Source of the DNA: Macrostomum lignano
Taxonomy: Eukaryota
DNA: 64,000 nucleotides
Assembly (NCBI GenBank): GCA_002269645.1
Contig: NIVC01001528.1
Coordinates: 1-64,000, forward strand
Reading direction: 5' to 3'
This document shows, piece by piece, positions 23,966 through 60,381 of the stretch. The position numbers were made by a program, and so were the translations under genes. How positions within the stretch are numbered: the first letter of the stretch is position 1; every line of letters starts with the position of its first letter. The notes below the pieces were generated by a model. That model was not told the DNA's origin. It saw only the letters and a program-made list of their open reading frames with translations, and did not search any database.

Positions 23966-24719
23966 ATGCAGCGCTCCGTGCACCTGATTGCCCTCCTATC
24001 CGTGCCTCTGGCTCTGCTGTTCCTGGTGGCGATGAGTCAGCCAAGTGTGCTGCATCACGGATACATCGGCTGCTTTGTTGACAGCAACAGCAATAGAGAT
24101 TTGAAAGGCCTGACTGGGTTAAAGACCATTGGTCCTTTCACTGATAAGATTGAGTTGGCCTACTTTTACAATGGATACACCGTCACCATCGAGAGCTGCA
24201 GCAGCCTCTGCGCCCTGGGCAGATTTCGCTACTTCGGTCTGCAGGCAAGCGCCTTCTGCTTCTGCGGCAACAGCTACGGACTGCACGGAGCCGCTTCATC
24301 AGATTCTGAGTGTAACACAAACTGCTATGGAAACAGCAGCCAGATTTGCGGCGGCCACGATAGAAACTCCATTTATGAGAACTTCTATGCGCCCGGTAAG
24401 AAAAATTTCCTGGTCATTTAGCTAAAGATTCCTGCATCTACATTTTCTCAATTTGTGCTGCTGCTCAGAGACCGGCCTCTTCAAGCGCGTGGCCTCAACC
24501 AAGTCGATGCTCACCACCGCGCCCGGACAGCCAGAGAACAGCACCTACTGGAGCCAGGAGGCCACGGGAGTCTTCGAGTGCGCCGCCGCCTGCCACCGCA
24601 GCCCGGACTGCCTCGCCTGCGCCTTCGTGCAGTCCAGCCGGATGTGTCGCCTCCTGAGATTCGCCGCTGTGCCCGGCGAGGTCGCCAGCGAGGCCCAGTG
24701 GGTCTGGGTGAAGCCGTGA
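23966..24719 (+). CDS. Secreted WSC + PAN/apple-like protein, copy 1, 226 aa; join(23966..24395,24469..24719)
   Basis: Hydrophobic signal peptide MQRSVHLIALLSVPLALLFLVAMS. WSC pattern YIGCFVD...TIESCSSLC...RYFGLQ...CFCGN...C..NC.GNSSQICGG..RNSIY. 73-bp phase-1 intron. PAN pattern ECAAACHRSPDCLACAF...MCRL. No transmembrane or GPI tail. Confidence 0.9.
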
Positions 24720-25257
24720 GCCTGTCGGTCAATAAAGCAAGCGGAAGCAGGAAGTACGAGCCAAGTGATATTCAACCTGATATTCGGAACCAAGCTTAAC
24801 TTCTCAAAACAGCTGACATACCGTAGGGGATCAGCAATCTAAGTAAAAAAATACAGAACTGTCCTGGTTTCCACCACGCACTTTTACGCCGAATCCTACG
24901 CGCTAAAAGAGAGCAAATAATCCCCCCCCCACGTGATCGCGACCCAAGCAATTACCGAAGTCGCTAAATTTGAAGGCTTTTATGAAGTCTTAAATGAATT
25001 AATGGCTTCGGAAACTTTCTGGGCCTTTATTGCCGCATTGAAAGGATTAAAAGCTTCTTGGTCAAGAAAATTACTTTCGATTTACATGTAGAAGCACTTT
25101 TAAACTAAAACTAAAGAGCTTTATTCACAGTTTTTGTGAATCATTTTCAAATAAAGGTACGATATTTCATATAAAACATGTACATGTATGTATAGATTTT
25201 CCAGGAATATATTCATTCTTGTTAAAAAAAGTATTTTTATTTTTTTTACTTGGGGCT

Positions 25258-26228
25258 TTAGCACCAGAGGCGCCAGCACCAGAGGCGCCAGCACCAGAGG
25301 CGCCAGCACCAGAGGCGCCAGCACCAGAGGCGCCAGCACCAGAGGCGCCAGCACCAGAGGCGCCAGCACCAGAGGCGCCAGCACCAGAGGCGCCAGCACC
25401 AGAGGCGCCAGCACCAGAGGCGCCAGCACCAGAGGCGCCAGCACCAGAGGCGCCAGCACCAGAGGCGCCAGCACCAGAGGCGCCAGCACCAGAGGCGCCA
25501 GCACCAGAGGCGCCAGCACCAGAGGCGCCAGCACCAGAGGCGCCAGCACCAGAGGCGCCAGCACCAGAGGCGCCAGCACCAGAGGCGCCAGCACCAGAGG
25601 CGCCAGCACCAGAGGCGCCAGCACCAGAGGCGCCAGCACCAGAGGCGCCAGCACCAGAGGCGCCAGCACCAGAGGCGCCAGCACCAAGAGGCGCCAGCAC
25701 CATTGGCGCCAGCACCAGACGCGCCAGCACCAGAGGCGCCAGAAACAAAAGAGGCGCCAGTACCATTGGCGCCAAAACCAAGAGGCGCCAGCACCAGAGG
25801 CGCCAGCACCAGAGGCGCCAGCACCAGAGGCGCCAGCACCAGAGGCGCCAGCACCAGAGGCGCCAGCACCAGAGGCGCCAGCACCAGAGGCGCCAGCACC
25901 AGAGGCGCCAGCACTAGAGGCGCCAGCACCAGAGGCGCCAGCACCAGAGGCGCCAGCACCAGAGGCGCCAGCACCAGAGGCGCCAGCACCAGAGGCGCCA
26001 GCACCAGAGGCGCCAGCACCAGACGCGCCAGCACCAGAGGCGCCAGCACCAGAGGCGCCAGCACCAGTGGCGCCAGCACCAGAGGCGCCAGCACCAGAGG
26101 CGCCAGCACCAAGAGGCGCCAGCACCATTGGCGCCAGCACCAGACGCGCCAGCACCAGAGGCGCCAGAAACAAAAGAGGCGCCAGTACCATTGGCGCCAA
26201 AACCAAGAGGCGCCAGCACCAGAGGCGT
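25258..26228. repeat. 15-bp minisatellite (agcaccagaggcgcc), ~60 copies, with a variant ~110-bp cassette present twice
   Basis: Tandem array; the variant block occurs at ~25681-25790 and ~26106-26215. Confidence 0.96.
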
Positions 26229-26854
26229 CAGTTCAATTGTTTAAATTTTTTTAATGAACAATCAATGAAGCACTCAATTAATCCACTTTGACTTTCAGCA
26301 ACTAGAACCTTGAGAAAACTGATAAATAGCCATAACTTTTTGGGTTTTAAATCATAACTTCAAAAGCGCCAGAGGTCCTTGCGAATCCCGTGAATCTTGT
26401 AAAACAGCCTCCAACAGAGGACGTACGATCGAGTTGAATGTTTTTTGCGACGACTAAAACCGAACTCCAATGAAATTCAAACAGTTAGCGTTGTTCTAAT
26501 CCAGTGTATTCCCGCTATTTCGACATTGTTTGTCACATTGAATGATACTGGATGAATAGACCCCAATCGCATGATTGCAATCCAGCATATGGTTAATAAA
26601 CTTTATGACTTGCAGTCAACCCCCCTCACTAGGGATTTTTAAAAAACACAAAAACTCCCAACCCCCACTTTTACCCGACCTAAGAGTTGGGGAGGATCGA
26701 ATGAAGAGAGTCAAAGGATGCTGCCAGAGCCACTGCTACGCAGAACGGATCAATGATGCGGTGGGCATTTTTTTCACGATTTTAAACTTCCTAGCTTTAG
26801 CGGCTCAGGAATTACAAAGCAACTTCCTTGCCTCGGCTACCATTGTTCTCTCCT

Positions 26855-27825: not shown

Positions 27826-28160
27826 CACTTTATTAAGCCACATTGTCGCACAATCGGCGAAAGGCATTGCTGCCCATTCCGCCGACTCCCCTGAGCAGAC
27901 ACACAAGCGCGCGGATACGTACGCAGTCATACATACAGGCACACACTCACACAGGAGTGTACAGCGGCCCTAACTTTATTTATCGTTAGGCATGTACACT
28001 TCACTGCGCCTTGGGGGTTGGGCCTCAAGGGCGTTAATTGCACGAGCAGAGCCAAGCCGAGATTCCAATTTAGCCCGAAATGAATTTGACTGCACTTGGA
28101 ATCGAGCCTGGGCCGCTGGCACATCAGAGCTCCGCGCCAGACCTCTAGGCTACGTCCCCC
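27826..28160 (-). mobile_element. tRNA-derived SINE, family A, copy 2
   Basis: Colinear with 16476-16835; head gggggacgtagcctagagg...ggctcgattcc. Confidence 0.8.
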
Positions 28161-28694: not shown

Positions 28695-29324
<630 letters not shown>

Positions 29325-30544: not shown

Positions 30545-31316
30545 ATGTTCCGCCCCGATCAGGCCCTCCTGCTGCTGCTGGTGCAGGGCTATTGTTACTC
30601 AGGGCTGCTGCTGCCTCCGCAACCGCTGGGCCATCAGTACCTTGGCTGCTACGTTGACGGAGGCAACGGGGACCGGGACCTGGTTGGCCTGAAAGGGGTC
30701 ACTACTTTGGGACCCTACTCATATGACTCAGGAAACCCGGTCTTTGTCCGAGAAGAAAGTCTGACGCTGGAGATGTGCAGAGAAATCTGCTCCTACGGCC
30801 GCTTTCGCTACTTCGGTACCCAGAGCCGCGTTTTCTGCTGCTGCAGCTCGACCTACGGCTCGAAAGGCGTCGCCGCTGCCGCTGACTGCATCTACCCTTG
30901 CAACGGCAACACGTCTCAGGAGTGCGGCGGCGACTCAAGGAACTCCATCTATGAGTCTCTGCATCCACCGAGTGAGTTCTGCGCCAAGAACATTGTGATC
31001 CTCTCAATAAGTTGAACCAGTTTTTATCCTAACAATTTAGACAACTTTTTGAACTCCTTCCTAATTTACAGTTGGACCGAAACTAACGAAAGTTCCCGTT
31101 GCTTCCATGCCGAGCATCGCAGCCTCCACCAGCTCCATCGTTTACCGCAGCGAGACGGCCGGAAGCGTCATCGAGTGCGCGGCCGCCTGCCACCGAAGCC
31201 CGGACTGCCTCGCCTGCGCCTTCGTGCAGTCCAGCCGGATGTGCCGGCTCCTGAGATTCGCCGCTGTGCCCAGCGACATCGCCAGCGAGGGCCAGTGGGT
31301 CTGGGTGAAGCCGTGA
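30545..31316 (+). CDS. Secreted WSC + PAN/apple-like protein, copy 2, 223 aa; join(30545..30971,31072..31316)
   Basis: Signal peptide; YLGCYVDG...LEMCREIC...RYFG...CCCSS...C.YPC.GN..QECGGDSRNSIY; a|gtgag donor and tttacag acceptor give phase 1; PAN exon ends QWVWVKP. Confidence 0.88.
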
Positions 31317-32194
31317 CGAATTTGCAACTACAAAAGCAAATGAGCAAAAGCAACTTCTGGGATGGCGAAATCGAGCAAACAAGCAGAGAACAATTACTTA
31401 ATGTTGCTTTTTTTTGGCAAAGGCTTTTTTAATTAGTAACGTAGACTGCCCTACCGTACGTTAACAATTTTTCTACCTTATCTCCTTATCTTTTGAAAAT
31501 TGTTCCCAAGTGGCTCTTTTACACTTTTTCGCGGCACCCCAAATTGATTGTCGCCATTGTGAAGCAGAATCTGAATTGACAAAGCAAAACCAACAACTAA
31601 ATTCGGTGTTAAACATGTTAATACTGCAATGTAATATGATTTCCACCTGTCTTGACAAAACTTAACCAAGCAGAGCCAATTAGCGAGTTTGCAGTTCTCT
31701 ATCATGAGCATGCTCGTAAAACACCTGTCTAACTGTGCCCGAAGTCAATCAACTGTCAAACGTCCATCGATCCGCTGAGTCCTAAGAAATCTCGCCTACT
31801 ATTGAGTAAGTAGTAAGATACGGTTATGAAGCTACTATTGAGCAGTGTAGTAAAAGTGAAAGTGCAGACTGTCGGTGACGCACTGAAATGCGTCAGAACG
31901 ATGGAAATTTGAAGCAGTACATTTATTTGAAGAAGAGCTGCTTCCTCATTTCTGAGAAGCTGAGAACAACGTAGATTCACACAGGGGGCTTACCATAAAT
32001 ATTAACATCGTTTTCAATTCTTAGAAAAATTGACTTCCATTTTTCCCCAGATGCTGCTTCAATTGGGCTTGGAAGTTTCGCGGATTTTCACCTGCCCAAG
32101 AGAGCACTCAAATTTTATACTCATAGCGACTCTCCGCATTAGCTGTGTAACATCAAAAACAGCTGGTATCCATCTGCACTCCTTGGTAGCAGCC

Positions 32195-32388
32195 TGAGGA
32201 TCTAGATGCTAATTACCTGAGGTTTTAGATGCTGATTGCCTGATGATCTAGATGCTAATTACCTGAGGTTCTAGATGCTAATTACCTGAGGATCTAGATG
32301 CTAATTACCTGAGGATCTGGATGCTAATTACCTGAGGATTTAGATGCTAATTACCTGAGGATCTGGATGCTAATTACCTGAGGATCCA
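32195..32388. repeat. 23-bp minisatellite (tctagatgctaattacctgagga), ~7-8 copies
   Basis: Direct tandem repetition. Confidence 0.88.
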
Positions 32389-33938: not shown

Positions 33939-35170
33939 AAACAGAGTTTTGAGTCGCTGATGAGAGACATTTTAAAAATTCTGAGACTCGCAGAGTTAGG
34001 AGCCTGAGGCAGCTTCATCTTCTAGCTACCAAAGATGGGAGAGCTGCATGACTTGTCACGCATTGCTGTCCTCTGCTTGCTCAGTGAATTCTCAACAAGC
34101 TGGTGCTTGCAGGCTAATCCTCCCACAGCGATTCAGCCAGGAGTAAGAGACGAGACTGATGCAGACAAAGAATTCTATACAATAGATAGCTATGCGAAAG
34201 AGATGTCGCTGGTGCCTGAGTTGACTCAGTTACGTTGGGAAAGACAATCGGCCTGGAGGGGTAGGCTGGATCGATGAATCTTCTGCAGAAGTTCTGCAGC
34301 AGTCTGGTGTTACGAATCAGTGCCGGCGCTGTCAATGCTTCCGCTGCTTTGGAGTTTGAGGCTGACGTGTTGTGCAAGCTGCCCTGCTGTGCATGCATCT
34401 ATTAATGTCTCCGGGTTGAGCAGCTTTGCTTAGCTGTCTCAGCTTTGCTGCAATGCTTTAATCCTCACCTGGCAGCAGAGTGGAACAAAACTCGGTGCTC
34501 TTACCTCTGCTTCTTGACTCGGCTTCCGTTGCCTCGGTCTCGTTACCGATTGACTCCCGATTCGGGCACCTGGGGTTTGGAAATTGCATCGTTCCATTTG
34601 CAACGATAAGATAGTTTAGTGACTTGGTGCTATTCCACTTTCCATTGCTACTGCTTTGTTTTTGTTTGCATTTTCAGTTTTCTTTACTTGAATTCGCGCC
34701 TGACGGCATCCTACGTCAGATAGACTGACTATTTATGCTGTGCAATGGGGCGTGTTTCACGTGACCATCGGGTAGGATTGGCTGTGTTCAGGTAGGTGGA
34801 TTTCCGCGCTAGCACTTGAAGCATTGTCTGTGCCACGGTGAGTAACGGCCGCTGGAGAGGTCGCACGACGACCCGCAAAGCTGTGCAAGGCAAAAAAACT
34901 GCTACAGCTGCAGCTAAACAGATGGCCCCACAGTTTTTATCTATGAAGACCAGGCGGTTCAGGAAATTCCACAAGGCAGACAAGTCGCATGCATGGCTGC
35001 ATGGAAATCAATGTAAAGCTAAGTTTCTTGTGAAAGGCACGAATTCGAATATACTCCGGCTTTCGCTTGCCGCTTTCCGTGTCAATCAAGCGATACAATG
35101 CGAGCTTCCTTTCTGCCTCTCTGCCGCTTGGTCAAGATGGACAAGGGAAGCTAGGTTGGTTGTCTTGCTG

Positions 35171-35184
35171 GTTACCATGGCAAC
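35171..35184. promoter_or_regulatory. RFX X-box (GTTACCATGGCAAC) upstream of WSC-PAN copy 3
   Basis: Exact consensus match, ~285 bp before the ATG. Confidence 0.65.
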
Positions 35185-35467
35185 TTGTCTGAACTGCTTA
35201 CCAGCCTGCGCAGGAGAGTTACAGAGTCACCAAGCCCTGCAAGTCGCAAGCAACCAATGAAATTTCATCCGCGCCTCATCAACTCATGCCATTGTTTCTT
35301 GTGAAAAAGTCCGCATATAATACACATCCATCTGAAAGGCATCTTGGCCTGTCCGTAATCTTGTCAAAGGGTGTCCAGCAGTGAATCCTCATCCTGTAGT
35401 CAGAGTCCAGCAGCGTCAAGCAGCCTTCAGTCTTCATCCAGCTTGCTGTAACCGCCAGTGCGCCAGC

Positions 35468-36077
35468 ATGCAGCGCTCCGTGCACCTGATTGTCCTCCTA
35501 TCCGTGCCTCTGGTCCTGCTGTTCCTGGTGGCGATGAGTCAGCCAAGTGTGCTGCATTACGGATACATCGGCTGCTTTGTTGACAGCAACAGCAACAGAG
35601 ATTTGAAAGGCCTGACTGAATTGAAGACAATTGGGCCTTTCACCGATAAGATAGAGTTGGCCTACTTTTTCAATATGTACACCGTCACCATCGAGAACTG
35701 CAGCAACCTCTGCGCCCTGGGCAGATTTCGCTACTTAGGTCTGCAGGCGCGAGCCTTCTGCTTCTGCGACAACAGCTACGGACTGCACGGAGCCGCTGCG
35801 AATTCTGACTGTCAGGAACTTTGCGTTGGAAACAGCAGCCAGATTTGCGGCGGCTACGATATAAACTCCATTTATGAGAACTTCTATGCGCCCGGTAAGA
35901 ACATTTTCGGGTCTTTTGGCTAACGATTCCTGCATCTAAATTTTTCTGCATTTGTGCTGCTGCTCAGAGACCGGCCTCTTCAAGCGCGTGGCCTCAACCA
36001 AGTCGATGCTCACCACCGCGCCCGGACAGCCAGAGAACAGCACCTACTGGAGCCAGGATGCTAGTGGTCCTTGGTAA
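35468..36077 (+). CDS. WSC-PAN copy 3, C-terminally truncated (WSC only, 178 aa) or pseudogene; join(35468..35894,35968..36077)
   Basis: Exon 1 is intact and highly similar to copy 1. Exon 2 homology breaks at ...tggagccagga| (~36058) and reaches TAA at 36075-36077, before any PAN cysteine. Confidence 0.8.
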
Positions 36078-36535
36078 CTTTCTGTGGCCTCTGGCACAAC
36101 GCTAAGTCAGTCTTAGGAGTCTTGGTGGTAGCAGTGGTCCTAAGGACATGAAATCAAAAAATAGAAACCATTTTTCATAATGGGCACCACTCCAGTGGAT
36201 CCACTTTGTTCTTTTTCTAGTGCAAAGAATATATTTAACAAACTGATTGTCTACTTTCAGTAGCAAAATAAGCGGCAGATGGGTAGAAAATTTTACTATT
36301 GCAATTTTTGTACTTGCTTTATACTTATTTCACATAAGCAGAAGTCTCTTGCCCCAAATGCCAAAGTGTATAGAGGAACAGATTCTGCTGCACAGTTTTT
36401 AGGTCATCATGTAGTTGCACACAACTTCTGTACAGAATGCAAACTGGCAACTTGACTCTTGTTTGAGTAAGCCGTTCACCCATTGGTAGATATACTGTGA
36501 GAATATTCTGCTTTTGTAATCGTTGTATTAATTAT

Positions 36536-36776
36536 AGGCAGGAGTTGTGTGCACCCTGGCGCACTTTAAGCGACATTGTAACACAACCGGCGAGAGGCAT
36601 TTCCACTGCCCATTCCACCGACTCCCCTGAGTAGGCACACAAGCGCGCGAATACGTACGCAGTCATACGCACAGGCACTCACGCAGGAGTGTACAGCAGC
36701 CCTAACTTTATTAATAGTTAGGCATGTACACTTCACCTGTGCCTTGGGGGTTGGCCCTCAAGGGCGTTAATTGCTT
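36536..36776 (-). mobile_element. SINE family A, copy 3 (tRNA head missing)
   Basis: Body colinear with the other copies; ends abruptly at aagggcgttaattgc, next to the retroelement relic. Confidence 0.75.
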
Positions 36777-36779
36777 GAT

Positions 36780-38600
36780 TAAGTTTTTATTTGTCAATAA
36801 CCATGGAGAGTGCACGCGCACTAACAGCCAGACAGCTCAGAAATCAAGGCGCTCACACGGCTTTAGGGTGAGCTCAACGGGAACCAGACTGCTGCCTCCC
36901 TACTTCAAGGTGAGCTCACAGCTTTTCCTGCTGTTGTGCACGAGGCCTTTTTATCTTGCGCAGGTGTAGAGGGCGGTCAGTCGGCCAGAAAGCGCAGCCG
37001 GGCCTACCTGATCCGAGAATTTGTCAAGCCCAACGCCAACCAGTCAACCAAGAGCCTGACCGCCTGGATGGAGAACGGAAACTTGGTGATCAAAAAGCAG
37101 CCGCCAAGCCTAAGCAAAATTTACACTCACCAATGGATCTCTGGCAATGCTCAAATCCTACAACGCCTGAACTGACGACGGCTCGCTCATCTACTTGAGT
37201 GACGACGGATCTGTGAGCACCAGCAAGCTGAGAGGCTACCTGCTGTACTCCCAGAAGATTGGAGAACTCTTGGACGCCAACTACAGCCCAAACTGTGTGT
37301 GCGAGTTTGATGAAGACTAAAGGAAGCTGATGGCCAAGTCGGACTGCAAACCCCCGCAGCTGTACCACCGCCACCTGAACGCTCCACGCAATCTGAAGGT
37401 CACTTTGAACCGACTCGGTATTTTGCAGCCGCAGGCGCCTATCTGCCTGAGCTTCAACTCACCAGCCGGCTCTCAACGGTCCAGCTGCCGGTGCCGGCAC
37501 GCCTGCAAGCTGCCTGGCTGAGGCAAGCCGCATCCCGTCCAACTGCATCATCAGAGCAGCGATGCGGTGGAGGGGTCAAAGAACTAGATTTACTTTATAG
37601 CCACCATGCTTTTATCTCCCAACCGCTCTCATCCCATTGTTTGCATCCCCGATCGCCCCTGCTTGTCATTCCGCCCCGCTTCCAGTCCTTCCGGCTCTTC
37701 GGTCAACGACAGCTATGAGCAGGAGCGGAGTCTGAGGTTCTCCTTCGTGCAGGATCTGCTCCGTCACATCCGGCCCGGCTCGTTTATCAGCAAGGTCGAT
37801 CTGAAGCAGGCCTACCGCTCTGTCGGCATTCACCCGGACGATCAGGCGCTGACGGGTCTCAGCTGGCGTTTCGCGGCTGGCACCGAATCCTCGGTGTTCA
37901 TCGACACCCGGCTGCCATTCGGTGCCCGGGCCTCTTGCGAGATCTTTCACCGCCATTCATCGCCACATGCATAGGCAAGGATACCAAGTTTTTGTCAACC
38001 TGGACGACTGGGTGGTTGCCGGCGACTCGCAGGAAGAAGCTGAATGCACTTACAACTACCTGGTGCAACTCCTGCAAGACCTGGGCTTCACCATCAACTG
38101 GAGCAAGTCCACGGCTGAGCACAGCGGATGGTCTTCCTTGGCGTCCAAATCGACACAATTGACGACGCACTGTCGCTGCCCATGGACAAGGCCGCCAGCA
38201 CCAGGGATTTGCTGAAGGACTGCCTCTCCCGCAACATCGTCAAGCTCAAGCAGCTGGAGAGGCTGGCCGGGAAGCTGTGCTAGTTGGGCCTGATCAACAA
38301 GCTGCTGCGTCTGTTTTGACCTCATCAGCGACAGTCGAGATCTCCGGCTGCCTCAAGAAGGTCACAGTCTGCTGCAATGGTGGCTTCAGGCAGTGGACTC
38401 TGCCACCTACACCGCTTCACCCGCGCTTCCATCAGTTGGTGGCCATCGAGTCCGACAGCAGCTCCGAAGGCCTTCCAGGGCGGTCTCTCTGTGGCCGACA
38501 TCTGCTGCATTGATGACTGGCGCAGTGGCTCCGTCGTCTCCTATTTCTCGGACGATGCAGACTTTGCCGCAGACGCTCTGCTGTCACCTCATTGAAGCCT
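36780..38600 (+). mobile_element. Degenerate DIRS-superfamily (Ngaro-like) retrotransposon: gag-like and RT/RNaseH fragments
   Basis: RT pieces FISKVDLKQAYRSVGIHPDDQALTGLSW...FIDTRLPFGARASCEIF and VNLDDWVV...LLQDLGFTINWSKS. Upstream gag-like pieces (WISGNAQILQRL, YLLYSQKIGELL). Multiple stops and frameshifts; no YR ORF seen. Confidence 0.75.
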
Positions 38601-42421: not shown

Positions 42422-43176
42422 ATGCAGCACTCCGTGCACCTGATTGTCCTCCTATCCGTGCCTCTGGCCCTGCTGTTCCTGGTGGCGATGAGCCAGCCAA
42501 GTGTGCTGCATCACGGATACATCGGCTGCTTTGTTGACAGCAGCAGCAACAGAGATTTGAAAGGCCTGACTGGGTTGAAGACCATTGGTCCTTTCACTGA
42601 TAAGATAGAGTTCGCCTACTTTTTCAATGGATACACCGTCACCATCGAGAGCTGCAGCAGCCTCTGCGCCCTGGGCAGATTTCGCTACTTCGGTCTGCAG
42701 GCGCAAGGCTTCTGCTTCTGCGGCAACAGCTACGGACTGCATGGAGCCGCTTCATCAGATTCTGAGTGTAACAAAAACTGCTATGGAAACAGCAGCCAGA
42801 TTTGCGGCGGCTTCGATAGAAACTCCATTTATGAGAACATCTATGCGCCCGGTAAGAAAAGTTTCCTGGTCATTTAGCTGACGATTCCTGCATCTGCATT
42901 TATCTGCATTTGTGCTGCTGCTCAGAGACCGGCCTCTTCAAGCGCGTGGCCTCAACCAAGTCGATGCTCACCACCGCGGCCGGACAGCCAGAGAACAGCA
43001 CCTACTGGAGCCAGGAGGCCACGGTGGCCTTCGAGTGCCTCGCCGCCTGCCACCGCAGCCCGGACTGCCTCGCCTGCGCCTTCGTGCAGTCCAGCCGGAT
43101 GTGCCACCTCATGAGATTCGCCGCTGTGCCCGGCGAGGTCGCCAGCGAGGCCCAGTGGGTCTGGGTGAAGCCGTGA
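42422..43176 (+). CDS. Secreted WSC + PAN/apple-like protein, copy 4, 226 aa; join(42422..42851,42926..43176)
   Basis: Close paralogue of copy 1; 74-bp phase-1 intron; reading frame intact. Confidence 0.9.
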
Positions 43177-45157: not shown

Positions 45158-45511
45158 TTAGAGGCAAGGGGCCGTGTGCACCCTGGCGCACTTTAAGCGA
45201 CATAGGCACACAACCGACGAGAGGCATTACTGCCCATTCCGCCGACTCCCCTGAGCAGGCATACAAGCGTGCGGATACGCCCAGGCACACACTCACACAG
45301 GAGTGTACAGCGGCCCTAACTTTATATTATCGTTAGGCATGTACACTTCACTGCGCCTTGGGGGGTTGGCCCTCAAGGCCGTTAATTGCACGAGCAGAGC
45401 CAAGCCGAGATTCCAACTTGGCCCAAGATGAATGTGACTGCACTTGGAATCGAGCCTGGTCCGCTGGCACGCGAGAGCGGCCGTGATAGACCACTTAGGC
45501 TACGGTCCCCC
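45158..45511 (-). mobile_element. tRNA-derived SINE, family A, copy 4
   Basis: Head gggggaccgtagcctaagtggtctatcacggccgctctcgcgtgccagcggaccaggctcgattcc; A box TAGCCTAAGTGG. Resembles tRNA-Glu(CTC) by eye. Confidence 0.8.
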
Positions 45512-47227: not shown

Positions 47228-50200
47228 ATGCAGCTGACGCACCAGAAACTGCTGGCAGCTCTGCTGTCACTTGGCAGCCTGCTGGTATCGGCACAGCTGG
47301 CAGTCAAGTCCGTCAGCTACATCGGCTGCTTCGTTGACCTCAACGACAGCTCCAGGGACTTGACGGGTCTGTCGGGCATCACCCGGATTGGCCCCTTCAG
47401 CCAGATCAACCCCGCGGGGAGCCACCTGTTCCGCTTTGACATGACCATCGGCAGGTGCGTCAGGCTGTGCTCGCTCGGCCGGTTCAGGTACCTCGGCCTG
47501 CAGGCCACCGGCTTCTGCAGCTGCAGTCGGAGCCACGGCTCCCACGGGCCGGCCTCCGAGACCGAATGCAACCGGAACTGCACGGGCCATGCCAGACAAA
47601 TCTGCGGCGGTCTGCTCAGGAATTCGATTTACGAACTGGCTTATGAAGACGGTGAGCGAGCGATCGACTCTGGATTGTTGAGCACAATTAAAAGCGAATC
47701 TTGAACAGCTAATTTCTACCACTAAGGATTAAATTGCTTGCTCCCAGGGACAGTTGGTTCGGAAGACTCTACAATCATGGGCAGCTGTTTAGATTGAAGC
47801 CCCATTGAAACGCACTAAATTTCCTACACTTCAAATTTGTGCTCAGCGAACAATGCTAGGAATTCCCATTGTGAAACAAACACGTCCTGCGACTTTATAA
47901 ATCAATGTTAAATCAAGTGTAAACTTCAAACTGTAAACTATAAAATAAATAGAGTTTAGTATTTGTCAGTGAGAGTCAAAATAAACAATCAATATGGATA
48001 AAATTGTTTTTGACAATCTAAATGATAATTTGGACACTCAACATGAGACACGCATACAGCGAGCTGCAACAACTTGCTGGCAAACTCGTATTGGCCATGG
48101 AGTCCGTGGACAATCTAATCGATGAAAAGCCGTTCTAAATGAGAATTCGGACATTCAAAATAATAAAATGCCATTCTAAGTGATAATTTAAGCTGCCAAA
48201 TGTTTTCAGCAATTTTTTGGATTTTTAACTGATTAACGGAACAAGAACTCAACAAAAAGTCAATCTAGAGTGATTAAAAGGCAGAAGAACTAAAAACAAA
48301 GGATGGCAGCATTGGCAGCTGCAGTACCCTTGCTGCCTCTTTGATGGAGTGCCCCGCGTTAATGGCATCGATCAGGCGACGGCGATCTGCTTCACTTGTT
48401 TGAGGCGGCATTCTGCTGCTGATGTGTGTACGTTTTGCTGCTGCTGCCGGTGCGCGCGATGAGAGAAATTCTCATTTAGAATGGTTGGTTATTCGTAAGT
48501 GAGACTTTAGGATAATAGTCCGGCTCATGAGTGCGCGCAGCGCACGAGTGAGCATAGGACTATTATCCTAAAGTCTCACTTACGAATAGCCGCATTGTCG
48601 AATTTCAGTGGGGCCATAGACAAAAAGGGCATCGAAAGGAGAGAGGGGTTACCGAGGAGAGAGAGACATAAAGACTGAGGTGGTTTACTGGAGTTTGGGC
48701 CATAGACAACGAGGTTGCAAACAGGCTGGGGGTTAAGAGGGTGGAAAGGAAGGAGATGTGGAGAGAAAGAGAGAATAAAACGTAAATAGCTACATTCGCT
48801 TGGCCATGGAGAACCAGACGTCATATCCGATCAACTGGGGCAATCTGCCTGTCGAAAGTTTAGCCAACGTATCTAGCAGCGAACTCAATTGGATCTCAAG
48901 ACTTTCCACATCTCAGAAGGACATGAAGGATAACGAAGACTTTTTGAACTTCTTGCACTTTCTTGAGACCTGGAATCGGCTGGGCATTCGATGAGCGAGA
49001 TCATGGCTATCACGGGTCAAAAGTCCGAGAGCACGGTCCGGCGCTACCTGGCAGTTAAACGGGACAAGTCCCTGCAACAATGCAGCGATGCAGTGTCGCG
49101 TGCGTTGAACATGGGACAAAGCGCCGCGACCCACGGTCAAGTAACAATGCCTGCTGACATCAGCATCCAAAGTTCCATCGTGCAAGAAGCAGTGAGCGTG
49201 TCTGATGGTCGTCAGATGAACGGTCGGAATATCTTTATTATGAACAACTGCACTTTCAACAATTGCAATCTGTAATGGTCTTCGGCACTATGACAATTGC
49301 GCCATATTGATACTGCACAATTAACTTTCCATAGCGCTAATCTTTTGTTGTTGGTGCTTGCTGTTTTGTTCTAAAAATAGGTGTCCATTATCCCGAGTTT
49401 GAAATCATCATCCTGAAGTTTAAGTGAAAAAATAAATAAATGTGCTCACGGTTTAACCATAGACGATTGCATTATCCTAAAGGCTGATTTTTGACAATGG
49501 CTTTTTATCGATTAGATTGTCCACAGACTCTGTCCACGGAGCGAGCTGCCGCAGCCATAGAGCAGCCATAGAGTGTTTCTCGTTTGAATGTCCAAATTAT
49601 CATCTAGATTGTTAAAAACAATGGTGCACCACCCAGAAACTCCTCATATGGGCATCGAATAGAGCAAAACTCGTGCCATGCGCATGTTACGAAACTTTGA
49701 ATTGACCCAGGTGCCTTCCACATCTGGTGACTTTGGTTCAGACCACAGACTAATGTCACATCAAAGCCACGTCAGCCATATCTTCTCTTGGGCTCAGATC
49801 ATAGACTATACTCAAGAAGAACTCTTAGAATTGTTTGCTGAGCCAAGGACCCGCCCTCGGCCTGATAAAAACGCATCCTCGGACTTTCTTTTCCATAGAA
49901 CGATTTATTATCGCGTGTAATACTATACTCATGGTTCAAATCATGGGTTTCAACCATAGACAGTCTCCGCAGACCGCGAAATCGCCACGAAAAGACTGCT
50001 GAAATTACAGTCATTGTCTTTTAATTCTGACAGCGGGCCCCAATTCTGCAGTCGGGCATCTGTGGCGATTTCAGTTCGTATCGTATTTTTGGTAGCCGTT
50101 CTCCACTTCAATTGCAATCCTCTTGGTTACAGAGCAGAATTTAAAAATCCAAGCCATAATAGACTCGAAGCAGCTGCGATTTGCATTTGTCGATCTGTCT

Positions 50201-50796
50201 CACAATGCATTCCTTCGGAGCTTATGTTTTTAACTCTTCTTTTTCTTCTCTTCTCTTGTTTCTCTTATTTACAGTCTCGAAAATTTGTCTATGGTCTGAA
50301 TGTACAGAGAGTACAAAGAATGGACAGACGCTCTGCCCCCACAGCCCCGCTAGCAGCGGTAAATATCTATGGTAAAATATATGGAACCTCCCATTTCTGC
50401 CCACACAGAGGGGTAACATGGGCATGAACAAAAAGTTCTTCAAGTAAACTACTGTATTTCTTAGGATGCATATTGCTGAGAAATTACTTGCAGTTTTATG
50501 GTATCCCGAATTGTCGTCAACAATAAAACAAAGCCTCTGGTATTTCAGCAACTGGCGGCTTCAAGACGCTGCCAGCAGCATCGCAGCCTCTGGTGTCTGA
50601 CCCAGGATTCAGTGTCAGCACTCACTGGAGTCTGCCCGCCTCCGTGTCGCTCGAGTGCCTCGCCGCCTGCCACCGCAGCTCGGACTGCCTCGCCTGCGCC
50701 TTCGTGCAGTCCAGCCGGATGTGCCGCCTCATGAGATTCGCCGCTGTGCCCAGCGAGGTCGCCAGCGAGGCCCAGTGGGTCTGGGTGAAGCTGTGA
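47228..50796 (+). CDS. Secreted WSC + PAN/apple-like protein, copy 5, 223 aa; join(47228..47651,50549..50796)
   Basis: Signal peptide MQLTHQKLLAALLSLGSLLVSA; WSC cysteines intact. g|gtgagc donor and tatttcag acceptor are phase-1 compatible and open the frame into the PAN exon; the intron is 2897 bp. Confidence 0.78.
48005..49620 (+). mobile_element. Crypton-like (DUF3504 tyrosine recombinase) relic within nested inverted repeats, inside the copy-5 intron
   Basis: SAGHSMSEIMAITGQKSESTVRRY (48976-) matches the YR box-II pattern (GH changed to GQ, Tyr kept) and ends in NNCTFNNCNL. Outer IR arms 48005-48134 / 49496-49620; inner IR 48130-48147 / 48467-48484. Confidence 0.65.
48490..48588. repeat. 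99-bp near-perfect hairpin (32-bp perfect arms)
   Basis: tattcgtaagtgagactttaggataatagtcc (48490-48521) is the exact reverse complement of 48557-48588. The loop also pairs (gctca/tgagc, gtgcgc/gcgcac). Confidence 0.95.
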
Positions 50797-51135
50797 TCCT
50801 TGACTGAGCCGTCATTTAACAAAAATTCCCAAATTAATTCACTGTTCTGCAATAGAATTAAACCCGTGCCAGTGCCCTGATGGGGAAAATTGTCACAATT
50901 AGCGCATGTAAGTGTGGCTACTACGAGTAGCAGAGAAGCGTAAAACTTCGATTTTTTGCACCAAACGAGCTATAAAATTGGAATCGGTTCGAAAATCTTT
51001 TATAGAAACAAAAAACTACAGTTGATCCACTCAAGCACGGGAGCTCAGTGTCTCGGTTTTTATGTTCCCATAAAATTAAAGTTCTCATCGGATTAGCTAC
51101 GGAGGAAGGCACAAATGCGTCTCTTCTATTTTACA

Positions 51136-51552: not shown

Positions 51553-52650
51553 ATGTTGCCTCTCTTGCTGCTCCTAGTACCAGCAGCCCTGAGCACAATG
51601 GTGAATGCTCAAGCAACAATTAGCCACTCAAACTATATCGGTTGCTATGTGGACGGGGACGACACCAGCCGAGACTTGACCGGCATGGCGCCGTTTTCCA
51701 CCTTCGCGTCCACGAGCGTCGGGTCCGGCATTCTGTACAGGCCGGACATGACCGTGTCCATGTGCGGCAGGATTTGCGCTCTTGGCAGATTTCGCTACTT
51801 CGCTCTACAGGCCACCGCCTTTTGCAGCTGCGATTCAACCTACGGCAGCCACGGATCCGCAGCCGAAGCCGACTGCTACCAGGACTGCGCTGGCAACGCG
51901 TCGGAGAAGTGTGGTGGACCCTACAGGAATTCCATCTACGAGAATGTCTACCAGCCTGGTACGAGCCCGCGTCTAGGAGGCTTTAAAGCCTTCTTTAAAG
52001 AAAACTAAAGCCTTAGCTGTTCTTTGTTGCGTAGCCACCTGAATAGCTAAAATCCCTCTGGGAAATCTTGAGAGGTCTAACTATGGCTGAAGAACTAAGT
52101 TCCATGAATATATTCAGAACAGAGTCGTGAACAAGGACTACATGTACTAAAGTAGAAGGACGCAACACTCGAAGTTCAGAAGCTCAGTGTCGTCTATGTT
52201 AGCCAAAGCTTAGGGACGACTGGTCATGTACTCTGGAGGCAGTGCAAGACTGCGAAATACCGGTACGAGCACAGAAGAGACTCTAGATGATGCGCGAACG
52301 TATCGTATTTGTAGAAAGAGCCTTTTTATTTAAGACTAGAACGCCATGGTTAAAAGGTCCTCACTCCCCTACCCCGCAATTCTTCACTTACAGTCGGTTC
52401 AAAGTTCACCAAGGCCGCCTCGAGCTCCAACAGCATCGTGAAAAACGCGGGCCAGTCAATCCTGACCCACTGGAACGACACCTCGCCATCAGCCAACAGC
52501 CAAATTAAATGTGCGGCCACCTGCCAGCGCAACCCAACCTGCCTCGGCTACACCTTCGGGCAGTCCAGCCGAATCTGCTGGTTGACGACCTTCGCCTTGG
52601 CGCCCCCGATCGTCGCTGGCGAGTCGGCCTGGATCTGGATGAGGAACTGA
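51553..52650 (+). CDS. Secreted WSC + PAN/apple-like protein, copy 6 (most divergent PAN), 220 aa; join(51553..51958,52394..52650)
   Basis: Signal peptide; YIGCYVDGDD...VSMCGRIC...RYFALQ...CSCDS...CYQDCAGN..EKCGG..RNSIY; 435-bp phase-1 intron; KCAATCQRNPTCLGYTF...ICWL. Confidence 0.88.
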
Positions 52651-57096: not shown

Positions 57097-57851
57097 TCAC
57101 AGCTTCACCCAGACCCACTGGGCCTCACTGGCGACCTCGCTGGGCACAGCGGCGAATCTCATGAGGCGGCACATCCGGCTGGACTGCACGAAGGCGCAGG
57201 CGAGGCAGTCCGGGCTGCGGTGGCAGGCGGCGAGGCACTCGAAGGCCACCGTGGCCTCCTGGCTCCAGTAAACCCTCCGGACCAGCATTTCGGGCACGGT
57301 GATCAGAGCGATTTTGGTTGAAGCCATCGACTTGTAGGACCCATTGGCTGGAGTTTAACGAATAAATAAACCTTATTTTAAACAAAAACATTGTCAACAG
57401 CCACATCGCTGAACTCACCTGTTGTGTAGATGTTTTCATGCAAACTGATTTTTTTGGTCCCACCGCAGGACTGTGAGTTGTTTCCGGCGCACTTCTTAAC
57501 ATCACAGCCTCCACCGTTGCACGGCGGAATACGCTGCACAGTCGACCCGCAGACGCACTCGCTCCCATCGCGCAGACCGAAGTAACGAAATCTGCCCATG
57601 GCGCAGGCGCCACTGCAGAACTCGACGGTCATGTCGTCTCTGTCAAGGACGCCTCTAACAAAATCAACATCATAGGCACCAAGAATTGCCACACCCGTCA
57701 GCCCGTTCAAGTCCCCATGCGAGCTGTTACCGGAAGTGTCCAGGCAGCAGTCCACGTGGTTAATGAATTGCACAATGGGCTGCCCGAACACCGAGGCAGC
57801 TGTCAAGAGTCCAACAGCCGAAGTGAGCGAGATGAAGGCCGATGGCGACAT
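57097..57851 (-). CDS. Secreted WSC + PAN/apple-like protein, copy 7 (divergent WSC), 227 aa; complement(join(57097..57347,57419..57851))
   Basis: Signal peptide MSPSAFISLTSAVGLLTAASVFG; VEFCSGAC...RYFGL...CVCGS...C..KKCAGNNSQSCGG; 71-bp phase-1 intron; PAN exon near-identical to the other copies in its 3' half. Confidence 0.87.
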
Positions 57852-57978: not shown

Positions 57979-57992
57979 GTTGCTATGGAAAC
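57979..57992. promoter_or_regulatory. RFX X-box (GTTGCTATGGAAAC) upstream of copy 7
   Basis: Classic 14-bp X-box ~130 bp before the ATG, in upstream DNA not homologous to copies 1/3/8. Confidence 0.6.
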
Positions 57993-58765
57993 GATGCCGC
58001 TGTGCGTACAAGCCAGGCCCGTATGAGATATTTGCATAATCGAAATCAAGTCCCAAGTTTCGGCCTTGATGAAATATGGGAGACTTTTAAGTGGTGACAG
58101 CGCCGGTGTGTGAATGCTTTATGAGTTGCCACTCATTTTCTTGCGAGCGTGATCAATACTTGACTTCAATCTCTCACTCTCACACAGTCACTGACGTAAA
58201 AAATCGTGTGAACGTGCGTGATTTCGGACATTTTACGAGCTACACTGTACTTACAAGTCAGTGTCCCTCAGTAATGTCCCTCAGTAATACTTTTCAACTA
58301 TAATATTCAACCATCGCTATGAGCCTTGATAATTATCTTTGCAAAGAAAAAAAACCAGAATAAAAACTTCATGCCTTGTTGGGCGGTTACAGCGGAAAGT
58401 TTCGCAAACTGTCTTGTCACACAACCATGCTCTCCACGAAGTGACAGTCGTTGTTCCGACAGGAGTCACAAGATGCTCAGCTTCCTACCAACAAGCATCA
58501 TTCACATGTGTTCAAAGGGAAGCAGAGCGGAGCTGCAACAGGAAGTGAAGACTGCCTTCGGTTTGGATCGATCACAGTTTATCACGTCTCCACAACTTTT
58601 GTTAAAGCATCAGTTGCAGTGTTCCATTCTCAGTGAGCACTCAGCACCGGGCATGATCCGGTCTTGGAGCCGCTGCTTCGGAAGACAAAAGTTTGCAGCT
58701 GCAGGACGCGCGGCTTCCTCTTGGCTTGGCTCAGTTTATCACCTGGCATATCAGCAGGCAAGTGC

Positions 58766-58890
58766 AATATCAGCAATCATGAATGCAATATCAGCAATCA
58801 AGAATGAAATATCAGCAATCATGAATGCAATATCAGCAATCATGAATGCAATATCAGCAATCATGAATGCAACGTCAGCAAATATGAATG
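58766..58890. repeat. 21-bp minisatellite (gcaatatcagcaatcatgaat), ~6 copies
   Basis: Direct tandem repetition. Confidence 0.88.
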
Positions 58891-59615
58891 CAATATCCCT
58901 CAAGTTTTTAGTTCTTAGGCCGAAAACACAGACAAAGATCTGCAATGCCGCCGTGAAAACTCTTTGTTCCGTCATTCTACTTTTTAGTGTTTCTGTGCTC
59001 GAAGCTCCCTACTGGGGCCTCGCTCAAGCAGAAGCTGTGAAACAATTTGGGAAAGCAGCACCACATATCTGCTTTTAGCTCGTATTTAAAATATTGAGGC
59101 ACTTTCGAGTTGATCTTATGATATGGTGAAGTACTGTATCTGATATATGCCTCGGTAATTCTCGTATAAATTAAAACGAAATTGCTCTGATTACACCTTA
59201 CTACTGTTTCAGTAGCATAAGTCAGTTTTAGATGCAAAAACTAGACGGCGAGTTGGATTTTCATTATTCACCAATTCTAACTATAAGCTACTTATTACGA
59301 GCTACTAAAATGTTAATCAACACAGCATCGGAGTTACGAGTAGCCAATGCATTTTTTGCCAAAAGGTCAAACTCGTACTAATCATGAAGTCTCTACATGC
59401 ATTGTATTTGTTATATAGCTCGCACAGGCATTGAAGCAGAGAATGTAATCTATAAACTGGCTCATACCAAAGCAGAGAGGCAATAAATATAGTTCAGAAA
59501 ATATTGTCAATATTGTCAATATTTCATCGGATGTTGCGCCAAAGAGCAGCTACCGGTGTGCAGAGGCTTCATGCCTAGAGAATCTACCAAATGATCAGCG
59601 ACAGACCATCGCAGG

Positions 59616-60381
59616 TTACTCAGTGTACAGCTTCACCCAGACCCACTGGGCCTCGCTGGCGACCTCGCTGGGCACAGCGGCGAATCTCAGGAGGCGGCAC
59701 ATCCGGCTGGACTGCACGAAGGCGCAGGCGAGGCAGTCCGGGCTTCGGTGGCAGGCGGCGAGACACTCGAAGGCCACCGTGGCCTCCTGGCTCCAGTAGG
59801 TGCTGTTCTCTGGCTGTCCGGGCGCGGTGGTGAGCATCGACTTGGTTGAGGCCACGCGCTTGAAGAGGCCGGTCTCTGAGCAGCAGCACAAATGCAGAAA
59901 AATGTAGATGCAGGAATTGTTAGCCAAAAGACCCGAAAATGTTCTTACCGGGCGCATAGATGTTCTCATAAATGGAGTTTCTACTTTGACCGCCGCACTT
60001 CTGGCTGCTGTTTCCAGTGCAGTCTTCGTTACACTCAGAATCTGATGAAGCGGCTCCGTGCAGTCCGTAGCTGTTGCCGCAGAAGCAGAAGCCTTGCGCC
60101 TGCATACTAAAGTAGCGAAATCTGCCCAGGGCGCAGAGGCTGCTGCAGCTCTCGATGGTGACGGTGTATCCATTGAAAAAGTAGGCGAACTCAATCTTAT
60201 CAGTGAAAGGCCCAATGGTCTTCAACCCAGTCAGGCCTTTCAAATCTCTGTTGCTGTTGTCACCATCAACAAAGCAGCCGATGTATCCGTGATGCAGCAC
60301 ACTTGGCTGACTCATCGCAACCAGGAACAGCAGGGCCAGAGGCACGGATAGGAGGACAGTCAGGTGCACGGAGCGCTGCAT
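59616..60381 (-). CDS. Secreted WSC + PAN/apple-like protein, copy 8, 230 aa; complement(join(59616..59875,59949..60381))
   Basis: Close paralogue of copies 1/3/4 in inverted orientation; 73-bp phase-1 intron; frame intact, ends WVWVKLYTE. Confidence 0.9.

Follow-up and report, generated by a model that had tools for sequence, protein, structure and literature searches.

A tandem array of small WSC-PAN genes in Macrostomum lignano, with signs of gene conversion in the PAN tail

Described WSC and PAN proteins and the array in the window

The WSC domain is built on the PAN/apple fold, with a long L5 loop around it and two extra disulfides (PMC9024836). The domain occurs in Kremen, a kringle-WSC-CUB transmembrane Wnt co-receptor, and in Wsc1, a membrane-anchored cell-wall stress sensor. 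The WSC domain of fungal lectins, SiWSC3 for example, binds beta-glucan, and PAN domains mediate protein-carbohydrate contacts (PMC9024836). Both domains also meet in one secreted-type protein, as they do here, in multi-WSC proteins of microbial or fungal type (P0109, P0141, P0197), but these have three WSC repeats or a PAN before the WSC, carry PAN_4 rather than PAN_1, measure 350-800 aa and are not close homologues of the genes described below. In Macrostomum lignano itself, small secreted WSC proteins are prostate or seminal-fluid candidates (PMC5977470; PMC6953679). Many of the 76 prostate-limited transcripts are WSC-annotated, and knock-down of Mlig-pro46, which has WSCD2 homology, gives a sperm-competition effect.

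The stretch analysed here (the window, 64,000 nucleotides of M. lignano contig NIVC01001528.1) contains a real tandem array of eight small two-domain (WSC + PAN/apple) genes (Table 1). In tblastn searches with the exon peptides of g1, the interval from 23966 to 60381 gave exactly eight matches to exon 1 (E 1e-19 to 3e-96) and exactly eight to exon 2 (E 4e-14 to 4e-54); the rest of the window gave noise only. All eight introns are GT..AG, in phase 1 and at a homologous position, and poly(A) signals lie 12-112 nt past the stop in five genes. A first-pass annotation had described eight genes of one architecture (leader, one WSC, phase-1 intron, one short PAN/apple module), seven of them intact, and tblastn, gene models and Pfam bear this out; the exception is g3, which has lost its PAN core by deletion. 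Minisatellites and transposon fragments are abundant in the spacers, and a 32-nt minisatellite (46390-47229) adjoins the ATG of g5.

Table 1. Genes, homogenised tracts and deletion junction in the window (positions of the window; percentages for tracts are nucleotide identities)
Feature	Position	Strand	Exons and intron	Product	Remarks
g1	23966..24719	+	exon 1 23966-24395 (leader + WSC), 73-nt phase-1 intron, exon 2 24469-24719 (linker + PAN)	226 aa	young clade; AATAAA 12 nt past stop
g2	30545..31316	+	exon 1 30545-30971, 100-nt intron, exon 2 31072-31316	223 aa	divergent WSC exon, 45% aa identity to g1 (tblastn); PAN core of constant type
g3	35468..36077	+	exon 1 35468-35894, 73-nt intron, shortened exon 2 35968-36077	178 aa
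g4	42422..43176	+	exon 1 42422-42851, 74-nt intron, exon 2 42926-43176	226 aa
g5	47228..50796	+	exon 1 47228-47651, 2897-nt phase-1 intron, exon 2 50549-50796	223 aa	divergent WSC, constant PAN core
g6	51553..52650	+	exon 1 51553-51958, 435-nt intron, exon 2 52394-52650	220 aa	sole member with a non-homogenised PAN core (60% nucleotide identity, pS 0.40-0.47)
g7	57097..57851	-	exon 1 57851-57419, 71-nt intron, exon 2 57347-57097	227 aa	most divergent WSC, 35% aa identity to g1 (tblastn); PAN core DNA 97.5% identical to g4, g8
g8	59616..60381	-	exon 1 60381-59949, 73-nt intron, exon 2 59875-59616	230 aa	young clade
Homogenised PAN-core tract, g1	24546..24719	+			94% identical to g7, g2, g5 tracts; ends at stop codon
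Homogenised PAN-core tract, g2	31167..31316	+
Homogenised PAN-core tract, g4	42996..43176	+			97.7% to g7 over 43003-43176; 90.8% to g5
Homogenised PAN-core tract, g5	50616..50798	+
Homogenised PAN-core tract, g7	57097..57270	-
Homogenised PAN-core tract, g8	59627..59805	-
g3 deletion junction	36061..36189				self-blastn and alignment

The array is not an isolated family. Searches across the M. lignano genome show it to be one array within a very large expansion: PAN cores occur at 150 or more loci, and exon matches number 176 or more, spread over dozens of contigs in many tandem arrays. The same eight-gene order is also present on contig C818. UniProt already lists predicted proteins of the window under the name "WSC domain-containing protein", and g4 is 100% identical to UniRef A0A1I8IHA2 over its length. 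The transcript-based BOX15_Mlig names of NCBI are on none of the 90%-identity clusters of the window clade and are carried by other WSC+PAN members, and the spliced g4 protein had no record in the assembly collection.

In Mytilus galloprovincialis, a 203-aa protein (P0189) has the same minimal layout and a similar size, with a WSC domain (55 bits) that opens on a similar 'YVGCF.D' motif, followed by PAN_1 (24.1 bits, above cut-off). It is a single uncharacterised record, only 28% identical and possibly incomplete at its N-terminus, and no comparable expansion or homogenised PAN exon was seen. The expansion is lineage-specific, and the WSC-then-PAN architecture is not unique, because the Mytilus protein shares it. 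The proposal of a lineage-specific family therefore stands for the expansion and not for the layout, nor for a family of eight genes. No named WSC+PAN family was found in the searchable literature, and the first-pass annotation had recognised none; the genes were in UniProt already.

Two PAN-fold modules behind a leader

The N-terminal module is shown to be a canonical eight-cysteine WSC domain. Pfam WSC (PF01822, gathering cut-off 27.8 bits) scored above cut-off in all eight spliced proteins (38.5-55.6 bits), and the cysteines C36, C78, C82, C98, C100, C116, C120 and C128 (g1 numbering) are invariant in the eight genes; from this conservation the four-disulfide pattern of WSC domains is predicted. 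An AlphaFold2 model of full-length g4 (pLDDT 79, pTM 0.74) gave as best Foldseek matches the WSC domains of Kremen (5FWS, E 1e-6) and Wsc1 (7PZ2, target TM 0.73). Kremen1/2 and Wsc1 share the eight-cysteine WSC fold with the window proteins, which differ from them in having no kringle, CUB or Ser/Thr-rich stalk and no predicted membrane anchor.

The exon-2 module is a minimal PAN/apple domain, as shown by Pfam, by a profile search against the PDB and by AlphaFold2 with Foldseek. Scores of the full proteins against PAN_1 (PF00024) sit at the gathering cut-off of 21.4 bits (18.3-23.3 bits, above it in four of seven), the isolated g4 module reaches 25.9 bits, and all but one of 16 family modules match at E <= 0.01 (best 2e-8); by these scores exon 2 would be called PAN, as had been claimed, if close to the threshold. 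This was further supported by the PDB profile search, where all 20 matches with E < 0.5 are PAN/apple proteins, among them SML-2 (E 2.8e-5), MIC4, the HGF N domain and plasminogen. For the AlphaFold2 model of the isolated module (pLDDT 83) Foldseek placed the HGF N domain first (TMq ~0.6, probability 1.0), followed by plasminogen PAp, SML-2, SRK PAN and LAPP, with modest E-values (5e-3 upward).

The module has a core pattern C-x3-C-x5-C-x11-C, with four cysteines invariant in 16 members. The first two lie inside the predicted helix 34-43 of the module, and the pattern predicts a core disulfide pair that ties the helix to the central sheet. This helix-to-sheet double-disulfide pattern (C-x3-C...C...C) is common to the HGF N domain, plasminogen PAp, the apple domains of factor XI and prekallikrein, SML-2 and MIC4, all of which match the module by Pfam, PDB profile or predicted fold. 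The exon-2 module is smaller than these: its core measures about 55 residues and contains four cysteines, where apple domains have six, and it is present in single copy, fused behind a WSC domain; the ligand preferences of its relatives (galactose, heparin, protein) are not transferable to it. In the clade of the window genes there is one extra cysteine, unpaired by cysteine count.

A single N-terminal hydrophobic segment was seen in Kyte-Doolittle windows (1.5-2.8), and past residue 30 there is no TM-like segment, with no window above 1.3. AlphaFold2 predicted a helix at residues 5-23, and g2 has a weaker leader. By this heuristic the small proteins, of about 200 mature residues, are probably soluble and secreted and would have no membrane anchor, as had been claimed.

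Divergence of the WSC exon and homogenisation of the PAN tail

The genes had been divided into a young clade and very divergent members. The split holds over the proteins (g3, g4 and g8 are 87-93% identical to g1; g2, g5, g6 and g7 are 43-55% identical), but the divergence is limited to exon 1 and the linker, and the PAN cores of all divergent members except g6 have 85-98% DNA identity to the others. Between divergent copies the synonymous sites of the WSC exon are saturated (pS 0.58-0.80), while pS is 0.03-0.17 in PAN codons 173-226. Over the final 150-185 bp of exon 2, nucleotide identity rises to 85-98% from 45-56% in the WSC exon (Fisher p 1e-13 to 1e-30). The similarity tracts have sharp edges, begin at varied points inside exon 2 and end at the stop codon, and their GC3 is 0.91-0.96 versus 0.65-0.83 in exon 1. 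In trees the WSC exons form branches of 0.3-0.9, while the PAN cores form a star with tips of 0.006-0.08. On other contigs, C819 holds a chimeric gene, and genes on C3825 and C528 are only 53% identical in the WSC and yet have the same PAN tail.

A saturated WSC exon next to a near-identical PAN tail that ends at the stop codon points to gene conversion, and these comparisons indicate concerted evolution of the PAN core, which leaves a variable WSC head with a constant PAN tail. PAN cores could also be alike through very strong purifying selection on an old module or through codon bias. Across the whole family the PAN core is indeed more conserved than the WSC exon (60-75% vs 42-53% aa identity), so that the PAN module is under stronger constraint, and GC3 is high throughout the window genes. 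Constraint of this kind is, however, at odds with the near-identity of the synonymous sites a few hundred bases downstream of saturated ones in the same genes, with the abrupt and gene-specific tract starts, with the PAN core of g7, whose counterpart on C818 is less close to it than are the PAN cores of its neighbours g4 and g8, and with g6, which stands in the same array and is not homogenised. This explanation is already disfavoured, and we consider it very improbable.

The loss in g3 was located by self-blastn. Family homology ends at 36061, which leaves the gene without a PAN core; positions 35057-36061 align to 42068-43019 around g4, and 36189-36442 align to 44718-44952 on the g4 side. 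From the gap between these two blocks, about 1.7 kb (PAN core and downstream sequence) is missing in g3, which is either a pseudogene or a WSC-only remnant. Its counterpart on C818 has independent lesions, a 4-bp deletion and a lost acceptor site. The separate lesions agree with birth-and-death evolution as first suggested, but not in pure form, as the PAN core evolves in concert.

Decay could extend further, so that the cluster would be largely non-functional: unexpressed or decaying copies in a repeat-rich, recently duplicated genome, with open frames that persist only by the youth of the copies or by repair through conversion. The lesions in g3 and its counterpart fit this, as do the missing transcript-based names in the window clade, the repeat-filled spacers with a minisatellite at the g5 start codon, and a young-clade pairwise omega of 0.5-0.96. 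Against it, seven of the eight reading frames remain intact and the splice sites are conserved, in spite of saturated synonymous sites between the WSC exons of the clades, where omega is 0.2-0.45; the eight WSC and the four PAN cysteines have all been kept, C818 keeps the same gene order, and poly(A) signals follow the stops. We regard a largely dead cluster as unlikely. In the young clade pN/pS is 0.56 overall and above 1 only in two short windows, which is no more than a hint that the WSC head is under diversifying selection.

Putative roles of the window proteins

Related domains bind glycans in some proteins, and the window proteins are probably soluble glycan- or protein-binding proteins; a lectin assignment would have this homology as its basis. 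The most likely setting, which we put forward by analogy only and at clearly less than even odds, would be adult reproductive secretions (prostate, seminal fluid or another genital gland), because small secreted WSC proteins of M. lignano are strongly represented there. PF01822 is listed 54 times in the supplementary gene table of a germline-signature study, and among the rows shown the annotation of a WSC gene gives testes expression. Against this link, the protein of the testes 'KREMEN1' gene has a single WSC. The candidates Mlig-pro4, -pro11, -pro28 and -pro46 resemble the window genes as small, cysteine-rich, putatively secreted M. lignano proteins with a leader, a WSC and one PAN-fold module per exon, and in a published table each of them corresponds to several gene copies. 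In Mlig-pro4, -pro11 and -pro28, however, the second module is another WSC (2xWSC) with no PAN, and the genes are located elsewhere in the genome; for Mlig-pro46 only the first WSC exon was located. All four located genes are AT-rich, versus a GC3 of 0.73-0.83 in the window genes. With up to 4 mismatches, none of the 18 primer pairs of the published seminal-fluid candidates matches the window; by primer match, no window gene is one of the 18 knocked-down candidates.

Their place outside this tested set suits another setting, in which the proteins would serve as soluble lectins, for pattern recognition or in mucus, of the epidermis, the gut or some other barrier tissue, with varied WSC heads that recognise microbial glycans (e.g. 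beta-glucans) and a common PAN tail that couples a shared effector. Beta-glucan binding by WSC in SiWSC3-type fungal lectins and the protein-carbohydrate contacts of PAN domains (PMC9024836) are in line with this, among proteins of solved structure the PAN module is nearest in sequence to SML-2 and MIC4, apicomplexan lectins that bind galactose, and a very large tandem family with variable heads fits a recognition repertoire. The sole tissue data on small M. lignano WSC proteins nevertheless point to prostate and testis, and the overall omega of the WSC exon does not reach 1. A barrier role appears rather doubtful to us.

The explanation we prefer, and hold to be somewhat better than evenly supported, is that the array encodes soluble secreted WSC+PAN proteins that would act as adaptors or lectins in an extracellular secretion. 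Each protein consists of two PAN-fold modules, one per exon, and the cluster evolves by tandem duplication and occasional pseudogenisation, as in g3. GC-biased gene conversion acts only on the final 150-185 bp of exon 2, and whole-exon swaps are also seen in sister arrays; the WSC heads have therefore diverged to saturation, and one near-identical PAN tail is common to six of the seven intact genes. The WSC head may bind a glycan or glycoprotein ligand, with paralogues that differ in specificity, and the constant PAN tail may dock on a common partner or mediate oligomerisation, possibly through the free cysteine, an idea that comes from cysteine counting. What is new in this family is the combination of a saturated WSC exon with a PAN tail homogenised between divergent copies.

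Gene models and domain architecture

A tblastn search of the window with the exon peptides of g1 returned eight copies of exon 1 and eight copies of exon 2, all within 23966-60381 and with only noise elsewhere, which confirmed both the coordinates and the count of eight genes in the first-pass annotation. Direct reading of the splice junctions showed that in all eight genes a GT donor follows the first base of a codon and the frame is restored at an AG acceptor; each gene therefore has a single phase-1 intron at the same position, as had been proposed. Six of the eight genes have introns of 71-100 nt, and those of g6 and g5 measure 435 and 2897 nt, respectively. The spliced proteins comprise 220-230 aa, except for the g3 product (178 aa), since the family similarity ends 34 codons into g3 exon 2, and the earlier count of seven intact genes was correct. 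Amino acid identity to g1 is 93% for g4, 91% for g8 and 87% for g3, which together with g1 form the young clade, and 49%, 55%, 43% and 50% for the divergent g2, g5, g6 and g7, respectively.

Pfam WSC (PF01822) scored 38-56 bits in 8/8 proteins (cut-off 27.8), and none of the eight WSC cysteines varies among them. Because PAN_1 (PF00024) scores on the full-length proteins were at threshold (18-23 bits, threshold 21.4), the exon-2 module was tested alone in three ways. By itself, the g4 module reached 25.9 bits with PAN_1, and 15 of 16 exon-2 modules from family members matched this model. When a profile of 16 modules was compared with all PDB sequences, the 20 matches with E < 0.5 were without exception PAN/apple proteins, among them Sarcocystis SML-2 (E 2.8e-5), Toxoplasma MIC4, the HGF N domain and plasminogen. 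An AlphaFold2 model of the module (pLDDT 83) likewise had PAN modules as leading Foldseek matches, with the HGF N domain (TMq ~0.6, probability 1.0) followed by plasminogen, SML-2, plant SRK and leech LAPP. Four module cysteines are invariant (C-x3-C-x5-C-x11-C), the first two inside a predicted helix. The assignment of exon 2 to PAN was thus borne out by Pfam, by the PDB profile search and by AlphaFold2/Foldseek.

The full-length g4 model (pLDDT 79, pTM 0.74) matched the WSC structures of Kremen and Wsc1 first and apple domains next. The Wsc1 structure paper (PMC9024836) describes WSC as a PAN/apple fold in its own right, around which a long loop bearing two extra disulfides is wrapped; the proteins of the cluster therefore consist of two tandem PAN-fold modules, one per exon. 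A hydrophobicity scan found the sole hydrophobic segment at the N-terminus and nothing TM-like downstream, and we infer on good grounds that the proteins are secreted. Taken together, Pfam, the predicted folds and the hydrophobicity scan support the architecture originally described, i.e. a leader, one WSC domain, one PAN module and no membrane anchor.

Evolution of the WSC head and the PAN tail

WSC exons and PAN cores compared
Property	WSC exon	PAN core	Fisher p
Nucleotide identity between clades	45-56% (WSC exon + linker, codons 28-164)	85-98% (codons 173-226)	1e-13 to 1e-30
GC3	0.65-0.83 (exon 1)	0.91-0.96	
Tree shape	internal or terminal branches 0.3-0.9	star, tips 0.006-0.08	

The two exons differ sharply in how far they have diverged. 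Between clades, synonymous sites of the WSC exon are saturated (pS 0.58-0.80; omega 0.2-0.45), whereas pS is just 0.03-0.17 over the last 54 codons among g1, g2, g4, g5, g7 and g8. This rules out purifying selection as the cause of the PAN identity. At the protein level, the PAN core is also more conserved than the WSC exon in the whole family, and selection and conversion hence push in the same direction. The similar tract spans 150-185 bp; its start point within exon 2 varies by gene and its end is the stop codon, as seen by self-blastn and nucleotide alignment. g6 shows no identity jump at the PAN core and is the sole long branch of the PAN tree. The PAN core of g7 is nearer to those of g4 and g8 than to that of its own counterpart on contig C818, and family genes on two other contigs (C3825 and C528) have WSC exons that are just 53% identical, yet carry the same tail.

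Swapping of whole exons as the sole mechanism was ruled out for g2, g5 and g7, where the linkers are divergent and the tract starts within exon 2. Evidence for exon swapping through recombination inside the intron comes from a chimera on contig C819 (L020, G000:C819:49487-52738), in which a g2-like WSC exon is joined to a complete young-clade exon 2 via a 344-nt intron with a young-clade acceptor. Since the synonymous identity is beyond the reach of purifying selection, we conclude that gene conversion, with occasional exon swapping, has kept the tails alike. The GC3 pattern matches GC-biased conversion.

In the young clade, pN/pS is 0.56 overall and exceeds 1 in two sliding windows (codons ~61-85 and 106-130), where most of the variable residues also fall. 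This is a local hint of possible diversifying selection on the WSC domain, which we do not claim.

Family size, gene decay and genomic surroundings

g4 is 100% identical to UniRef A0A1I8IHA2, a "WSC domain-containing protein" of Macrostomum lignano. In the genome searched (764 Mb, 5269 contigs, with the window as its contig C1528) g4 gave at least 176 exon-level matches, spread over dozens of contigs, and the PAN core at least 150 matches with 46-100% identity, both numbers being lower bounds. According to PMC12869490 the M. lignano genome is a recent polyploid, and part of the copies are therefore homeologues or alleles. The eight-gene series is repeated on contig C818 with order and orientation unchanged, and intronless members exist within the family. 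Of the sister clusters on C818, C819 and C2037, the analysis covered 3-kb loci and one piece of 4.5 kb. Among 1.84 billion representative proteins, a profile search gave >7500 WSC matches; ten full-architecture clusters were looked up and all came from M. lignano, eight being small proteins (205-219 aa) and two being long multi-unit predictions. The family had been described as lineage-specific; this holds for the WSC+PAN expansion, as far as the searched databases reach, but not for the architecture, as a 203-aa protein of Mytilus galloprovincialis has WSC followed by PAN_1 in a matching layout. Some microbial-type proteins have WSC repeats together with PAN_4.

Evidently, copies are also being lost. 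g3 lacks the PAN core owing to a deletion of ~1.7 kb, and its flanks align to the g4 region by self-blastn. In its C818 counterpart (L012, G000:C818:53197-56610) the PAN core is intact, but exon 1 has lost 4 bp close to its end and the acceptor is changed from AG to GG. Judged from these lesions, decay of the third array gene is proceeding independently in the two cluster copies. Similarity within the young clade extends from ~180-390 bp upstream of the ATG through to the stop codon, with none beyond. In five genes poly(A) signals lie 12-112 nt past the stop, so near that the 3' UTRs are probably very short.

Coordinates of sequence features in and around the gene cluster
Feature	Position in the window	Remark
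Tandem arrays	4831-5807; 7330-9349	24 nt x 41; 23 nt x 88
AT-rich region	~10-16 kb	33% GC; right of both tandem arrays
Upstream neighbour	15788-19643	ankyrin-repeat and protein-kinase exons
In-frame 33-nt repeat	17821-18260	'SNKDLKPSDES' units
Dispersed repeat, ~330 bp	16474-16835; 27833-28160; 36502-36774; 45128-45511	upstream of cluster; downstream of g1, g3 and g4
Minisatellites	25260-26231; 28772-29293; 32193-32386; 39225-39696; 40610-41809; 43958-44388; 46390-47229	last array: 32-nt period
Fifth PAN-tail cysteine	24600-24640; 43060-43100	g1; g4
g3 flanks	35057-36061; 36189-36442	
g4 region aligned to g3 flanks	42068-43019; 44718-44952	
Reverse-transcriptase fragment	37588-38215	between g3 and g4
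Open frame in g5 intron	48967-49275	

All cluster spacers checked contain long minisatellites (periods 9-42 nt, as many as 120 copies). The array with the 32-nt period runs right up to the start codon of g5, which is therefore without ordinary proximal promoter sequence. The reverse-transcriptase fragment is frameshifted and scores under the Pfam cut-off (RVT_1 21-23 bits). The g5 intron (2.9 kb) holds an open frame ('...AGHSMSEIMAITGQKSESTVRRY...') that by eye looks like a candidate C-terminal motif of a Crypton-type tyrosine recombinase, with no Pfam match at E <= 0.001; it may explain the length of this intron. Copies of the dispersed repeat are 84-90% identical. The upstream neighbour scores 54 bits with Ank_2 and 93 and 75 bits with Pkinase, and its in-frame repeat is located directly ahead of the kinase domain. 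The two tandem arrays in the left part of the window are large and have strong GC skew.

Possible tissue setting, proposed binding model and significance

Published work on this worm is suggestive as to tissue. Many of the 76 prostate-limited M. lignano transcripts are WSC-annotated; the prostate transcript RNA815_80.4 has two WSC domains, and knock-down of Mlig-pro46, which shows homology to WSCD2, lowered second-male paternity. In a supplementary gene table of the germline-signature study, PF01822 occurs 54 times, one testis-expressed gene included. Primers of 18 published seminal-fluid candidates (Weber et al. 2018 PMC5977470; Patlar et al. 2019 PMC6953679) gave no match to the window. By primer we could place four of these candidates in the genome: Mlig-pro28, -pro4 and -pro11 are AT-rich genes with two WSC domains, and for Mlig-pro46 the first WSC exon alone was seen. 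The window genes are thus not among these 18 candidates, and those located are not WSC+PAN. A search of paper full text and of two large supplement sets for the identifiers of further family genes (Mlig021789, 003588, 023418, 005479 and 025784) found nothing, and the exact g4 protein, as a proxy for the spliced transcript, is not on record in public assemblies. As the located candidates fall outside the subfamily and the primers are unmatched, we regard a reproductive setting of g1-g8 as possible but short of probable; a barrier or immune setting is unlikely.

The testes-expressed 'KREMEN1' transcript (Grudniewska et al. 2016, eLife 2016 supplement) was ruled out as a WSC+PAN member, being single-exon and single-WSC without PAN. 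Its primers map to contigs C93 and C212 (L041/L042; G000:C93:1010585, C212:244600). It has two N-terminal hydrophobic stretches and adjoins a long CLSV-type repeat, and the protein start 'GCFADSPNKRDMNEL' is similar to the WSC exon of the WSC+PAN family.

The frames have remained intact despite saturated dS, cysteines and splice sites are conserved and poly(A) signals are present, which supports the reading of an expressed, selected and secreted protein. By domain precedent, the WSC head would have a glycan or glycoprotein as its ligand, with the constant PAN tail binding a common partner or driving oligomerisation. A fifth PAN-tail cysteine ('CLAC', residue ~194 of g1/g4) is also found in g2, g5, g7 and g8, and brings the total to 13 cysteines in g1, g4, g5 and g8. 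As g6 and the majority of family members at other loci of the genome lack it, this cysteine is likely to be unpaired, and a disulfide-linked dimer or complex formed through it is plausible. Possibly, more than 100 WSC heads with differing ligand specificities could make up a combinatorial extracellular recognition repertoire, in which one conversion-maintained PAN tail with a clade-specific free cysteine would connect all variants to one shared partner or oligomer; such a repertoire could serve in sexual conflict, between ejaculate and recipient, or in the innate immunity of flatworms. We consider this full scenario quite improbable.

The genes were already predicted, both domains are well known and small secreted WSC proteins are familiar from M. 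lignano reproductive glands. In the literature searched we found no description of the second module as PAN, of the size of the WSC+PAN subfamily or of a variable-head, constant-tail pattern kept by gene conversion. Sexual selection, regeneration and bioadhesion are all studied in M. lignano as a model species, and its seminal-fluid candidates already feature small secreted WSC proteins prominently; to these our results add a second subfamily, WSC+PAN, which is very large (at least 150 loci) and labelled merely 'WSC domain-containing' in the current annotation, and opposite exon regimes within its arrays, with a diverging WSC head and a PAN tail under GC-biased, concerted homogenisation. For work on orthology and for designing probes or RNAi the PAN tail is therefore unfit, as a single exon-2 probe or dsRNA would strike many genes; exon 1 is usable. 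Should ligand specificity vary among the heads, WSC+PAN would offer a tractable example, in a spiralian, of how a modular repertoire evolves.
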